Below are positions 354 through 43,600 of a DNA stretch of 64,000 bases, one piece after another. This DNA comes from Lytechinus pictus (taxonomy: Eukaryota). Numbering within the stretch: the stretch's first letter is position 1; the number at the start of each line of letters is the position of its first letter. The translations under genes were made by a program, and so were the position numbers. Location of the stretch: positions 11,098,001-11,162,000 of the forward strand of contig NC_087245.1 of NCBI RefSeq assembly GCF_037042905.1, written 5' to 3'. The notes under the pieces are model-generated. The model worked only from the letters and a program-made list of their open reading frames with translations, did not search any database and was not told the DNA's origin.

Positions 354-1678
354 CTGACAAGAATCTACACCGCCTTCAATGTAACCAGCGCATAATTCTG
401 CTTCTTCTACAATATTGTACTGACTGTACAGAGAACTACAGGTGTTGTCGCTAATGAGATGAACAAGTGCCTTTTGAAGGTCGTATGAAACTGAACCAGC
501 TGAAGAAAAAAAAACAGAAAAGGAAAAGGATTTAAAGAATCACTTGCATTTGAATTAATATGGTGAAGTTCATTTTAATCATACAACAATTTTTTTCTTT
601 TTCAGCCTTTAGAAGGCAAATTAATGAGTTGGGAAAAAGATAACTTATTAAATGTTTAATCATAACTGTATGTCGAACAAATGCAGCCCGATGAAACACA
701 TTAGAAAATCATTTGCTATAATTACGTTACCTCCAAAGTACGTCGTTCCCCATCCTGCGATCCAACATCGACTGTACGCCATCGTCTCGTTTTGAAGAGT
801 AGCTAGACAAGCTGGTCTTACATAATCAGTGAATTCAACAGGTTCGGATAGATGAAGAAGTGCAATATCATTTGCTATTCCATTAATAGCGCCGTAATTT
901 GGATGCATGATGACGTCGTCAGCACCTCTCACCTCCTTATGCTCATGGTTATCAGACAAATGGCGAATTCCGAGGGTGATGGTGAAATCACTGGCTACCA
1001 TACCTTCTCTGTAGTTTAAGAATAAAAATGGCATACATTCACCGTGGTGTTCGAGTATGAATATGAATGCGAGTTACACAGGTCTACCATGTGACGGCTG
1101 TTGATAGAGTCCCTTATTAACAAGAGGATAAGACCTAGGATCCGATTACGTATATAGGAACGCATTTGGGATGAATAAGATGACTTAAAGGTGCAGAAAG
1201 ATATATAGTTGTGGTTCCAAACGAATAATCAGGTTCCGAGTCCACACACCCCTTGTCTACCCTAAACTAGCTTCTAGTAGTGGAAGATGGATGTATACAT
1301 CAGTCAAATATTAAAGATTAGCAAAATTCAAGTCACGAATAGTATAAGGTCAGGAAATATTTGAGTTAAACCACGCTGAAACGCAAGGTAAAATTGAAAA
1401 GGTGGTACTTGAAATTAAAGTTAATAAACCGTTACTAGGTACCGCTGAGGTTTATTACCCTACTCTACCAAATAAATAACTGGCAAATACTTACGCGCAG
1501 TGAGCTGCAGTCAAGATCCATTGGTTACTAATCAACGTACCACCACAAAAGTAACCTCCCATTTGAACAGTTGCGATCCAAGGGAATTCCCCTAGATCAG
1601 CATCAACTCCTCCAACTATTCTAGAGTGGTAATCATCAACAGCGGGTCGGGTACCACATGTAGCTTCATTCGTTAAAT
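354..1678 (-). CDS. Trypsin-like protease domain 7 (partial; exons 1495-1678, 731-1008, 354-499)
   Basis: R|IVGG, AAHC, NDIALL, VDSCQ; the GDSGGP exon is expected beyond the left window edge. Confidence 0.93.
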
Positions 1679-40600: not shown

Positions 40601-43600
40601 GCACGGCCTAGGAACAGGGGTGACTTCGCCCCCCCCCCTTCCCAAACCGTGTACAAAAACGTAAAAAAATGACCATCTGGGGTCCGTAACACAAAACTTA
40701 ACAATGATCGTAGAACAGTTTCTAAGATTGATTGCATAGACAATGCATAATCAATCGTAAAAATCAAGTGTACGATTAATCGCTAACCTTGTGTTACGGG
40801 ACCCCGATCGTGTTTTTACATGTCCAGCCCCCCCCCCCTTGGAAACGTTCCGCGGCCCCTGACTAAGATAAAAATGGCACCTTCAGTACTGCAGGTACGT
40901 AAGAACTCAGCATAAAACAACTATCCATCTTTGAATCAAAATGCCTTTTTAACCGATCTAAGTCCATTATCATTATATATTTTTTCAACGTAACTTTTTT
41001 AACCTACTAAAAACCGCATTGTCATTTCCTTTCATGAATCATATTTGTAATGAAATAGAATTTGTTCTGTTTTGTTCAGTCTCGTAAACGATTGGGTAAA
41101 CCAACGAAAAAAAGAAACGATTGAATGGTTCATACCGGAGTAAACATGGCTTCTGGAGAACATATCATTGACAAAATTTTGATGCAAAATGCATGAACAA
41201 CACTTTTCCTACGATATCAAAGATATTTCCAGTTGGGAGATGTTTGGTCGGGTGTTTAAAATCTAGAACCAATGGATAACCAATATAATTAGCTGGTGAA
41301 TACGGCAAATGAAAGAATCTTAAGAAATACTGGAGTAACAATAAAAAGAGGGAGAAAGACATATCAGTAGAATAAAAATGTATCTTAGGAAAGAAATATA
41401 CTGTACCTCCAGATTCCAGAGTTCCCCATCCTGCGATCCAACATCTACTGTATACTGTTGTCTCATTTTGAAGTGTTGCTAGGCAAGCTGGTCTTACATA
41501 ATCATTGAATTCGACGGATTCCGAGAGACGAAGTAGTGCAATATCATTTGCTATTCCATTGATATCACCATAATCAGGATGCACGATTACTCGATCGACC
41601 CCCAGCTCCACCTTGGAGTCGGGGTGTTCAAATAAGTGACGGATTCCAAGAGTAACGGCAAAATCACTCAGGTCCATGCCATCTCCACTACCCTCCCCGT
41701 CATCTCTTTATTCAAGAAAGAAAATTGGATGGATAAGGTAAGAAAACAATGTATTCCTTATGGTCAATTGTGATGCGGAAACTTCATGAGGTCCACATAA
41801 ATGTCTAACTTTAAACATTACAGAAGTAGGTAACCATGTACAGAATTATCAATGAAAGAAGTCAAATAAATTAAAATACTTCTACTCCTCGCTCATTGTC
41901 AAATGATATGTTAGATGTTTGCCCCATCTGTTACAAATATCGAGGCTACATAGATATAGATTATTTAAGAATTTATCATGAATCTATACCCCTTTCATAA
42001 ACCTATCCTCCAATTAGCCGCCTAATAGTAATGCGGATAATTCAATAAAAATTGCGTTCACAAACTCCGAAAATTATCCGCATTATTTTTACGAGCTCCC
42101 GTCCTGAAAAAGGCATATAATCGTCATGACAACTGACACGCCCCCTCCGATGCGGTTGTGTTGGAAAAGGGTGACCTTGTGACCGCACCATGGCAATTAT
42201 CCGCATTATTTGGAAATACGTTAATAAACTCAAAATCTTGTCCCGATGCTGCTATTATGCGGATAATTGCAGCATCAAAATAATGCGGATAACTCTGGTC
42301 CTCCTCCGCTTTTACGACCAAATTATGCTGCTATTAGCCGCATAATTGGGTTTATGAAAGGGGTATAAGTTTCATATTACTTACGCGCAGTGAGCTGCAG
42401 TCAGGACCCATTGGTTGTTAATCAACGTACCACCGCAGAAAGCCCAGCCCCTTCGAACAGTAGCGATCCAAGGGAATTCCCCTAGATCAGCATCAACTCC
42501 TCCCACTATTCTAGAGTGATAGTCATCTACTGCAGGACGGGTGCCGCATATACCTTCGTCCGTTAGATCTGTTGTGCAAAACATTCGATTAAGATTATTT
42601 TACTTAGCGAAAACACTGTTTTGGGCCAAATCAAACTGATTGCAAGAAACCCTTCCTAGGAGCAATCTGATAAAACAAAGTTAACATCATCTCCAAGACC
42701 TATGATTGATTTCATCCTATGCACCCTAAGAATCACAGTACTGGTGGAACAACGAGATCACGGTCTCTTATGGTAAAAACATGGCTATTTCGAAATTTTT
42801 GAGGAATAAGGGACCATGATGCCCCATCGCCTCTTTTCTTATCCTGGTCGTCATTTGTACGATCGCGCCAGAATTTGGCACAAGCTATCCTTACAATATG
42901 AACTACAAGCCTTAAAAAAGCGAAAACAAAACATATGAAAGGAATCATTTGGACATAAAAACCCGTCTTTATATATCGAGCCCCAATTCTAATGTTAGCA
43001 TTTAATTTTCAGATGTCATCTTTATGATACAGAATGTTAGCACGAAACTTTAAAGAGAGGCCATGGTGCCCTAGTCCTTCTAATGTTAAAAGTGCAACTG
43101 TGAACTTATAAAGAAAGGTAAGGTGCAACGTTGCACCTGCAAAATGGCATGATTTCTCCTACGACCTTTCGTATGAAACTTCGCAGTGTTCATATGGTCT
43201 TGTTTTGACATTGGGTTGCATCTCTAAATGTGCCAACCGATTATGCTAACTCCTATCTATTTGACATCGATGATTGCATTTATGTGTATCCAAAAACTAA
43301 CCGCCTTCTCCTCCAGTACAGTAATCATTGTCAACATTTTCGTCATCACTCAGTTGTCTACAATCTATTGGCCAATCTGCATTCATCGATTCCATGTATG
43401 ATTCCCGACAAGCATGTGTGACCTCTTCACATAGGCTCCTGCAAGGGCGTCGAGAAGGACCGCCATGCGGACAGTCAGCAAAAAGCATACCACAGAAGAG
43501 AAGCAGAAAGTCTTCATGACATTCTTCCATGATGGTTGTTTCTTCAATCACACTGATTGCAGTATCACGGTCTTGGGTTGATGGGTTTGGGAAGTAAGTC

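Follow-up and report, generated by a model that had tools for sequence, protein, structure and literature searches.

Published polyserases carry two or three protease domains, in several cases with at least one of them dead, and the benefit of having several catalytic units per chain has been described as unclear (PMC1435904). In human polyserase-1 (TMPRSS9), a type II transmembrane protein, an LDLa module and several S1 domains share one chain, and every S1 domain has an activation site to itself (PMC1435904, PMC4161349). Polyserase-2, polyserase-3 and the insect "polypeptidases" (Tenebrio, Anopheles, Nudel) also keep tandem S1 domains in one polypeptide, and an interdomain disulfide link once activated has been proposed for them (PMC1435904; PMC11172050). 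Enteropeptidase (TMPRSS15) has a SEA-LDLa-CUB stem before a single protease domain, together with MAM and SRCR modules and no Frizzled, and is activated by other proteases. To our knowledge, corin is the only vertebrate TTSP (a serine protease of the type II transmembrane class) that combines Frizzled cysteine-rich and LDLa modules in the stem before the protease. Corin has a single protease domain and an SRCR module but lacks CUB, and its activator is PCSK6 (PMC10376093).

The gene described here, from the sea urchin Lytechinus pictus, shares features with each of these systems and is an extreme natural case, with up to 14 modules that have intact active sites, binding stems of their own and the same activation site. 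Polyserase-1 has three adjoining protease domains behind TM-LDLa, the third inactivated by a Ser to Ala change, with no CUB or Frizzled modules between them, and its domains are reportedly released as separate enzymes; in L. pictus, by contrast, LDLa-Frizzled stem modules precede each protease, and all 14 catalytic triads are intact. Polyserase-2, polyserase-3 and the insect proteins differ in being secreted, in having two or three domains that are mostly inactive homologues, and in their other stems (Sushi, LDLa). The best solved-structure matches to the L. pictus catalytic domain are enteropeptidases (medaka 3w94, E 3e-62; human 7wqx, E 4e-61), in which the heavy and light chains are joined by cysteines that align with those of L. 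pictus; however, Pfam searches of RefSeq model P0001 and of the Strongylocentrotus purpuratus model P0153 return Trypsin, CUB, Fz, LDLa and SEA, and no MAM or SRCR. Likewise, the corin-like pairing of Fz with LDLa is found, but SRCR is not found by Pfam and the protease domains are many. The Xenopus ovochymase/oviductin polyprotease (OVCH) is secreted, has three protease domains and no known TM, SEA, LDLa or Frizzled, and is processed into separate enzymes. Its protease and CUB domains alternate in one product of translation (cited in PMC1435904). A holothurian relative of the sea-urchin gene family is automatically named "Ovochymase-1". Among fish, RefSeq predicts poly-trypsins in which one chain carries from 14 S1 domains (Lepisosteus oculatus, 4,066 aa) to about 19-20 (Sardina pilchardus LOC134070625, 5,915 aa), and each Sardina domain has a CGTTPLNPR|IVGG site, GDSGGP and PxCL. 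These unpublished predictions differ from the sea-urchin gene in having a signal peptide, no stems between the proteases and only about 37% identity, and most Lepisosteus domains lack Ser195 or His57.

The orthologue is S. purpuratus LOC578975 (XP model, 3,304 aa, uncharacterized; P0153), whose best BLASTP alignment to P0001 has 76% identity. It begins with a tail, TM, SEA and mucin segment, continues with CUB-LDLa-Fz-trypsin modules, and has the identical activation junction (13 residues, then IVGG) in all of them, but it has 4 protease modules (10 CUB, 4 Fz), as compared with 14 at the L. pictus locus. No publications on either gene were found under the LOC identifiers or under sea-urchin TTSPs with Frizzled or CUB.

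The L. pictus gene is on the minus strand and, taken as a single unit, would span about 143 kb. The window, i.e., the whole 64-kb stretch of DNA that was analysed (contig positions 11,098,001-11,162,000), is its central part and contains 5 complete protease domains and parts of 2 others. The locus as a whole encodes as many as 14 trypsin-like protease modules, U0-U13, all complete and apparently active, each following the plan of zero to three CUB, one or two LDLa, Frizzled and trypsin. CUB, Ldl_recept_a and Fz are above the Pfam cutoffs, as TTSP-type stem modules ahead of the S1 domain; PF00089 is above cutoff on the protease exons P1, P2 and P4, with 4 matches in P0001. The exon map, built from tblastn and a splice-site model, is as follows (window coordinates).

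66293-65317, minus strand: U0 LDLa, Fz and P1 exons, window-relative, past the window end (exon map)
62177-61879, 61250-61108, 59804-59642, minus strand: U0 protease exons P2, P3, P4 (tblastn, splice-site model)
57171-39842, minus strand: whole module U1 (splice model)
57171-56812, 45268-45155, 43655-43302, minus strand: U1 CUB, LDLa, Fz (splice model)
42568-42385, 41705-41407, 40416-40265, 40004-39842, minus strand: U1 P1, P2, P3, P4 (splice model)
37608-32607, minus strand: whole module U2 (RNA splice joints; Pfam CUB, Ldl_recept_a, Fz, Trypsin)
37608-37246, 35770-35411, 34742-34629, 34355-34002, minus strand: U2 CUB, CUB, LDLa, Fz
33882-33699, 33570-33293, 33050-32908, 32769-32607, minus strand: U2 P1, P2, P3, P4
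32606-30073, minus strand: U2-U3 intermodule intron, spliced out in RNA (RNA joint)
30072-24929, minus strand: whole module U3 (splice model, RefSeq)
30072-29713, 27103-26990, 26686-26333, minus strand: U3 CUB, LDLa, Fz
27481-27612, minus strand: pseudo-exon in the U3 CUB-LDLa intron, a 44-codon P2 fragment (P2 profile E 5e-23, positions 3-46 of 92)
26222-26039, 25910-25633, 25372-25230, 25091-24929, minus strand: U3 P1, P2, P3, P4
24100-19420, minus strand: whole module U4 (splice model, RefSeq)
24100-23741, 22807-22448, 21579-21466, 21281-20928, minus strand: U4 CUB, CUB, LDLa, Fz
20735-20552, 20424-20147, 19877-19735, 19582-19420, minus strand: U4 P1, P2, P3, P4
18908-16506, minus strand: candidate mucin cassette exon between U4 and U5 (modules 5 and 6), 801 codons, phase 1-1
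14460-10578, minus strand: whole module U5 (splice model; joined to U6 in RefSeq)
14460-14347, 13765-13412, 13111-12928, minus strand: U5 LDLa, Fz, P1
12809-12532, 12180-12038, 10740-10578, minus strand: U5 P2, P3, P4
7989-354, minus strand: module U6 within the window, P4 past the window start (splice model, RefSeq)
7989-7609, 5030-4659, 4224-3865, 2512-2399, minus strand: U6 CUB, CUB, CUB, LDLa
2175-1822, 1678-1495, 1008-731, 499-354, minus strand: U6 Fz, P1, P2, P3

The pseudo-exon was left out of the gene model. Apart from it, four short CUB fragments were all that turned up when every open stretch of either strand was searched with profiles for extra domain exons in the long gaps. The candidate mucin cassette is a Pro/Thr/Ser-rich tandem repeat with a 150/306-nt period, within an 838-codon open frame; RefSeq isoform X4 of LOC129255053 skips it, and isoforms X1-X3 may include it.

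The modules belong to a spliced polyprotein, not to separate genes. Every module has a length that is a multiple of 3 nt, enters and leaves in phase 1 and is stop-free, and the 14 modules concatenated in the splice model give 8,146 open codons; with its remaining parts, the whole protein would reach about 9,000-9,400 residues. An RNA contig joins the last base of U2 P4 (32607, phase 1) to the first base of the U3 CUB (30072) across a GT..AG intron; this joint, recorded as 30070/32605 "CT..AC (cut +2)" in an X1 contig, comes from a single contig whose shorter side covers 31 letters. That the run is RNA is a guess, for which its exact removal of GT..AG introns argues. Further RNA joints within U2 connect CUB to LDLa, LDLa to Fz, P1 to P2, P2 to P3 and P3 to P4, and the first mates of exonic RNA reads map to the plus strand, which fits minus-strand RNA in most stranded libraries. 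The U2-U3 intron itself (30073-32606) contains strongly expressed repeats, with reads from both strands. RefSeq joins 9 modules in LOC129255053 and 4 in LOC135153396, and the exon map agrees with these models at 100% identity across 2,433 aa of XP_063951984 and 99.7% across 5,148 aa of LOC129255053 X4. The continuity from module to module assumed in a preliminary description of this DNA is borne out by modules joined in frame (the RNA joint from P4 to CUB, the phase-1 modules and the 9- and 4-module RefSeq models), and the product, with at least two S1 domains per polypeptide, belongs with the polyserases. That the locus is a row of separate single-protease genes merely looking continuous is extremely improbable: there is an in-frame stop after each P4 if the donor is ignored, but a conserved phase-1 donor lies ahead of each such stop, the RNA contig runs from P4 into the next CUB, RefSeq itself builds multi-module models, and searches between the modules gave no exon for an initiator or a signal sequence. 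It was rejected on the phase-1 donors, the RNA joint and the absence of intermodule start exons.

Another possibility is that the modules are distributed over several shorter polyproteases, made from two or three transcription units (the N-terminal part with U0; U1-U9; U10-U13) or ended by polyadenylation within the array, after U5 or U9. Each chain would then bear 4-9 heads, with membrane anchorage confined to the first. RefSeq breaks the locus at exactly these points, with at least two genes annotated, and no RNA reads were found to bridge the two long introns (U1 CUB to LDLa; U9 to U10) or to connect the TM/SEA exons to U0. Moreover, if the P4 donor is ignored at U5, U9 or U13, the frame runs through a short tail to a stop, and poly(A) signals come next at U5 (two of them) and at U13; shorter isoforms are therefore possible, among them an alternative 3' end at U5. 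Yet the RefSeq breaks are the two introns of 11.5-12 kb lengthened by LINE insertions (the U1 CUB-LDLa intron, 11.5 kb, holds LINE/DIRS insertions), and both downstream models start at a Met within a domain exon (LDLa, CUB) without a signal peptide, LOC129255053 in the U1 LDLa exon. The donors and acceptors at the breaks match internal junctions that RefSeq does join, the frame is open through all 14 modules, and nothing convincing as a first exon, with a start or a signal sequence, was found in the stretches from U5 to U6, from the mucin exon to U5 or from U0 to U1. We consider a set of shorter chains rather unlikely. The locus illustrates how automated annotation can split a gene of this kind where transposons have lengthened its introns and then invent start codons within domains.

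The single chain would probably begin at the membrane. L. pictus exons just upstream of U0, two candidates among them, match in colinear order the N-terminal part of S. purpuratus LOC578975 (tail, TM, SEA, PTS).

79330-79052, minus strand: candidate cytoplasmic-tail exon, window-relative, orthologous to the LOC578975 N-terminus
76527-76390, minus strand: candidate TM exon, window-relative, orthologous to the LOC578975 N-terminus

The exon phases are compatible from the last SEA exon on, where they were checked, through the PTS exon to the U0 LDLa exon. The SEA match on a single L. pictus exon is weak (E 0.035); in the S. purpuratus orthologue it is above the Pfam cutoff (29.2 bits vs 26.4), and the SEA domain bears an autocleavage-like G|SIIV motif. 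An initiator Met exon was not found upstream of U0, and no L. pictus RefSeq model with the TM/SEA exons was found in a homologue search that excluded or under-sampled proteins longer than about 5,800 aa. Since splicing makes the protease domains into modules of a polyprotein, and since the orthologue begins with TM, SEA and mucin, we read the product as an expanded polyserase-like TTSP, probably anchored in the membrane. Its order would be cytoplasmic tail, signal-anchor helix, SEA, short mucin stalk and 14 modules, with the optional 801-residue mucin exon between U4 and U5.

The modules are alike where activation would occur. Six-frame translation gives six minus-strand activation junctions in the window, each a run of residues ending in (Q/H)-S-R followed by I-V-G-G.

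42498-42548, minus strand: U1 activation junction, 13 residues then IVGG (six-frame translation)
33812-33862, minus strand: U2 activation junction, likewise
26152-26202, minus strand: U3 activation junction, likewise
20665-20715, minus strand: U4 activation junction, likewise
13041-13091, minus strand: U5 activation junction, likewise
1608-1658, minus strand: U6 activation junction, likewise

The junction reads CGTRPA(V/I)DDY(Q/H/N)SR|IVGG at 6/6 window sites and 14/14 sites of the locus, the A-I-D-D-Y-N-S-R variant being among modules beyond the window. VRPACL occurs seven times in the window (61952, 41480, 33366, 25706, 20220, 12605 and 804) and GDSGGP six times. All 14 spliced domains have TAAHC (His57), NDIAL (Asp102), D-S-C-Q-G-D-S-G-G-P (Asp189 and Ser195), S-W-G-x-G-C and P-G-V-Y, and all have the His57/Asp102/Ser195 triad of the S1A fold; with Asp189, Gly216 and Gly226 in each, the S1 pocket is, judged from these residues, trypsin-like, with a predicted specificity for Arg/Lys. 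The preliminary description had proposed a uniform zymogen junction, and VRPACL with an Asp189 pocket in every domain; both hold throughout the locus, at all 14 junctions and in all 14 spliced domains, and its end points, 731 and 42568, are true exon boundaries in the exon map. The DDY motif, which the preliminary description speculatively offered as a recognition or sulfation site, is kept in L. pictus and S. purpuratus and is missing from Diadema and sea-cucumber relatives.

The cysteines of each module fit a tether of the chymotrypsinogen Cys1-Cys122 type. A Cys lies in the pro-segment a few residues before Arg|Ile. In alignments with enteropeptidase (7wqx) and plasma kallikrein (5tjx/8fgx), this Cys and that of PACL fall on the pair by which the heavy chain is joined to the light chain. 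Every protease domain contains 10 Cys, neither more nor fewer, and the count per module is even, 26 or 32. A bond between the pro-Cys and Cys122, on which the preliminary description had relied, is predicted in each module and fits the sequence. Such a tether is general in TTSPs (PMC4161349), and interdomain disulfides in polyserases have already been proposed (PMC11172050). Given continuity, tether and specificity, cutting at every R|IVGG would leave the molecule in one covalent piece. The earlier suggestion of a multivalent protease filament is upheld to this extent; since the product probably sits in the membrane in type II orientation and has a SEA domain and mucin stalks, we expect a tethered chain rather than a free filament.

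Cross-activation of the domains, and persistence of the product as one chain, we infer from analogy. Human polyserase-1 "generates three independent serine protease domains" (PMC1435904), so such chains need not persist, and the L. pictus chain might be a production form that, once secreted or delivered to the cell surface, is cut in its stems or linkers or shed at SEA into independent single-module proteases. The autocleavage-like motif of SEA would suit such a precursor, as would the full set of stem modules before each protease, as for a stand-alone enzyme. Against this, the linkers from the protease C-terminus to the next CUB or LDLa are short and acidic, a few residues long, and mostly lack Arg/Lys, although six modules carry one Lys (WIKD) in their C-terminal helix. 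The module borders showed no dibasic or furin-type sites, the pro-Cys/Cys122 pair would keep cut pieces joined, and polyserase-2 and polyserase-3 remain single chains (PMC1435904). We regard a precursor role as unlikely.

The reading that we favor, if only slightly, is a type II membrane polyserase of 14 modules forming a tethered and self-activating chain. Each module is a complete zymogen of the enteropeptidase/hepsin/TMPRSS type, with pro-Cys, Arg|Ile-Val-Gly-Gly, triad and Asp189 pocket. From what is known of the family, a cut after Arg would activate each domain, and the new light chain would be held to the preceding stem by Cys1-Cys122 and, through the peptide backbone, to the stem that comes after it, so that the fully activated product would be one covalent, membrane-tethered chain of active trypsin-like heads. 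The cuts could be made by the domains themselves, in cis or between neighbouring molecules, although this step has less support. The Q-S-R|IVGG sequence resembles the activation site of the autoactivating TMPRSS2. Autoactivation has precedents in TMPRSS2, hepsin, matriptase and matriptase-2 (PMC10376093). With a near-identical substrate at every site, amplification could be switch-like. In its strongest form, a mucin-stalked membrane array of more than 1 MDa and 14 zymogens would be a self-propagating, all-or-none amplifier in which one cut spreads along and between chains and Cys1-Cys122 keeps a covalent "protease polymer" on the cell surface; this version is speculative, and we would be surprised to see it hold in full.

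The identical Arg sites could instead be cut by a separate upstream protease, and the array would then be a multivalent effector rather than a self-amplifier. Trypsin or duodenase activates enteropeptidase. Indeed, some TTSPs, enteropeptidase and corin (by PCSK6) among them, are activated by other proteases (PMC10376093), and the strict A-(V/I)-D-D-Y-x-S-R, present also in 4/4 S. purpuratus modules, could reflect one dedicated activator. However, the P1 Arg of the site matches the Asp189 trypsin-type pockets of the domains themselves, and tethering of fourteen zymogens would give a very high local concentration. An outside activator is, in our opinion, a serious contender, though somewhat short of an even chance. 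The locus is a good system in which to ask whether tethered arrays of zymogens make activation switch-like, allow substrates to be captured multivalently or just raise the dosage.

The repetition of the modules is more than recent copying, as indicated by synonymous variation in the motif and by low dN/dS. Thus, 10 of the 17 motif codons vary synonymously only, that of junction position P3 varies both ways, and residues change at two positions only (V/I; Q/H/N). Compared with one another, the modules give dN/dS values of 0.10-0.34, and dS reaches 1.2; by this codon-based measure, every module is shown to be under purifying selection. Modules U6-U13 share 95-98% nucleotide identity, and the exact module number therefore depends on the assembly. 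Module number may evolve fast; it has about tripled since the split from S. purpuratus (4 vs 14), and eight L. pictus modules come from recent duplications, in units of up to about 6.7 kb.

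The repeated unit of this locus, delimited by Pfam and by tblastn queries made from one unit's translated exons, comprises zero to three CUB domains, one or two LDLa domains, a Frizzled domain (Fz) and a trypsin domain divided among four exons (P1–P4). According to tblastn of the window (contig positions 11,098,001–11,162,000) and its fetched flanks, 14 such modules (U0–U13, 5' to 3' along the gene) extend over ~130 kb of the minus strand; no further modules were found in the flanks past either end of the array. In a reference-guided splice model, every exon has canonical AG/GT borders, and each module is a stop-free multiple of three nucleotides, entered and left in phase 1. 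Joined end to end, the modules give 8,146 open codons. Read-through of each P4 exon meets an in-frame stop, and a conserved phase-1 donor lies ~9–26 codons ahead of that stop in all modules. U6–U13 are 95–98% identical, introns included, and derive from recent duplications of up to ~6.7 kb.

Several minor features accompany the exon map. The U3 CUB-LDLa intron holds a 44-codon P2 fragment (27481–27612, minus strand), 95% identical to the real exon, which is a pseudo-exon left by duplication; other introns contain short pieces of CUB (27724–27774 and, before the window start, window-relative -8634, -33423 and -53667). CUB domains usually have two disulfides; all CUB exons of this protein (e.g., 30072–29713 and 35770–35411) encode no cysteine, yet score well above the Pfam cutoff. 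If their P4 donors are read through, U5, U9 and U13 (10501–10578; window-relative -22731 and -63990) end in short, related tails, G-E-V-S-x-x-N-V-E-L-R-stop, that of U5 being the longest. Poly(A) signals follow the U5 and U13 tails, and one RefSeq model terminates on that of U9; these tails may be alternative 3' ends.

Splicing between modules is documented by public L. pictus RNA data, which were compared with positions 29601–35600. The GT..AG joints CUB/LDLa, LDLa/Fz, P1/P2, P2/P3 and P3/P4 of U2 are present, and first mates fall on the plus strand over exons, as expected of minus-strand RNA in most stranded libraries. In one contig, the end of P4 (last base 32607) is followed directly by the start of the next module's CUB exon (first base 30072). 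Since this single contig extends 31 letters from the joint on the shorter side, and U2–U4 are near-identical, the joint proves P4-to-CUB splicing in the array, not for one particular pair of modules. Repeats in the U2–U3 intron (30400–32400) are very abundant in RNA on both strands (contig depths in X1 sum to as much as ~10,000); the many loose ends indicate reads from other genomic copies of dispersed, expressed repeat families.

RefSeq models, retrieved by searching 1.84 billion representative proteins and looking up names and then mapped on the locus, divide the array. LOC135153396 (2,434 aa) corresponds to U10–U13, and LOC129255053 isoform X4 (5,159 aa) to U1–U9, including the U5-to-U6 junction and skipping the mucin exon; our independently built exon map matches them at 100% and 99.7%, respectively. 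We read these splits as probable annotation breaks, since each model opens with a Met within a domain exon (U10 CUB and U1 LDLa, respectively) and lacks a signal sequence; since the breaks fall at the locus's only two very long introns, of 11.5 and 12.1 kb, each with LINE-type insertions; since the splice sites there are the same as at junctions that RefSeq joins; and since a search of the inter-module stretches found no initiator, signal or extra domain exon.

Long introns at the RefSeq break points, with LINE-type ORFs (up to 529 aa, resembling reverse transcriptase and endonuclease)
45268–56830: long intron
window-relative -34830 to -22699: long intron

The 5' end is illuminated by the S. 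purpuratus orthologue LOC578975 (3,304 aa), whose four modules all carry the same junction, [13 protein letters not shown]|IVGG. At its N-terminus a cytoplasmic tail leads into a signal-anchor helix, followed by a SEA domain and a Thr-rich stretch, and its first ~330 residues are colinear with L. pictus exons just upstream of U0.

Exons matching the LOC578975 N-terminus (window-relative)
79330: tail exon
76527: TM helix exon
75577: small exon
74446, 73551, 72707, 68166: SEA exons
67616–67380: PTS exon

Within the SEA portion is an autocleavage-type motif, G|SIIV. Phase 1 fits throughout from the last SEA exon over the PTS exon to the U0 LDLa exon. An initiator exon was not found upstream of U0. 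[quoted passage not shown]

An open frame of 838 codons, made of Pro/Thr/Ser-rich tandem repeats, is situated between U4 and U5; its phase-1 borders at 18908 and 16506 mark it as a candidate mucin cassette exon. Its tandem array (16753–18609, minus strand; 150/306-nt units, 12 or 6 copies, 87–91% matches) encodes a Thr/Ser/Pro-rich repeat of 50/102 residues and accounts for the strong GC and AT skew there (GC skew 0.36 at 16–18 kb).

Six-frame translation of the window gives six minus-strand activation junctions, [10 protein letters not shown]-(Q/H)-S-R-I-V-G-G, with seven VRPACL and six GDSGGP sites, in agreement with the preliminary description, whose end coordinates, 731 and 42568, are genuine exon borders in the splice model.

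Activation junctions (six-frame translation)
42498–42548, minus strand: junction
33812–33862, minus strand: junction
26152–26202, minus strand: junction
20665–20715, minus strand: junction
13041–13091, minus strand: junction
1608–1658, minus strand: junction

None of the 14 protease domains has lost His57, Asp102, Ser195 or Asp189, and each retains the S-W-G-x-G-C and P-G-V-Y segments and has ten cysteines. Between modules, dS reaches 1.2 and dN/dS is 0.10–0.34; of the 17 junction codons, ten show synonymous variation only, and residues change at just two positions. The DDY motif is common to two camarodont urchins and absent in Diadema and sea-cucumber relatives.

The nearest matches to the catalytic domain are enteropeptidase, plasma kallikrein, factor XI, hepsin and TMPRSS2 (E 1e-62 to 1e-52). 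The pro-segment Cys and PACL Cys of this domain align with the heavy-light chain cysteines of single-chain enteropeptidase (7wqx) and kallikrein, the disulfide by which TTSP catalytic domains stay attached (PMC4161349). Cysteine numbers are even throughout (LDLa 6, Fz 10, protease 10, CUB 0). Since each light chain would run by a peptide bond into the following module's stem, one covalent chain would remain even with all Arg|Ile sites cut. The inter-module linkers are short, acidic and mostly without Arg/Lys, so the protease heads are unlikely to cut them. Such a chain need not persist: domains of polyserase-1 are released, whereas those of polyserase-2 and polyserase-3 are not (PMC1435904).

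The mutual activation of heads proposed earlier is partly supported, in that its premises are shown (sites, pockets, intact triads, aligned tether cysteines, one frame). Self- or cross-activation itself is plausible, given the Arg at the cleaved (P1) position, the Asp189 pockets, the very high local concentration of tethered zymogens and the existence of autoactivating relatives. TMPRSS2, hepsin, matriptase and matriptase-2 autoactivate; enteropeptidase and corin depend on other activators (PMC10376093).

By its predicted architecture, the urchin protein is a polyserase-type TTSP, i.e., several S1 domains in one chain. Disulfide linkage of activated polyserase domains has been proposed earlier (PMC11172050); a literature search found no paper on the L. 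pictus gene or its S. purpuratus orthologue. Published polyserases have 2–3 modules, whereas the L. pictus locus has 14. Also unusual are heads that all look active, a CUB/LDLa/Frizzled stem for each head, the mucin segments and the rapid module expansion relative to the four modules of S. purpuratus. Very long poly-trypsins are not confined to urchins, as unpublished fish RefSeq predictions have 14 to ~20 trypsin domains. Those of Sardina pilchardus (P0238) and Lepisosteus oculatus (P0002/P0244), all uncharacterized, hold them back to back in 4,000–5,900 aa, and the site CGTTPLNPR|IVGG recurs along them; Ser195 or His57 is missing from most domains of the gar L. oculatus. Either genuine polyproteases or tandem genes fused into one model may underlie these predictions. 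Sea urchins have further large TM/SEA mosaic proteases (P0008, P0249 and P0255), with sites like CGTRPAY(T/K)P(D/Y/F)Q(S/T)R|(I/V)VGG; two to four S1 domains were detected in two of them. Multi-head TTSPs therefore seem to be more widespread among echinoderms.
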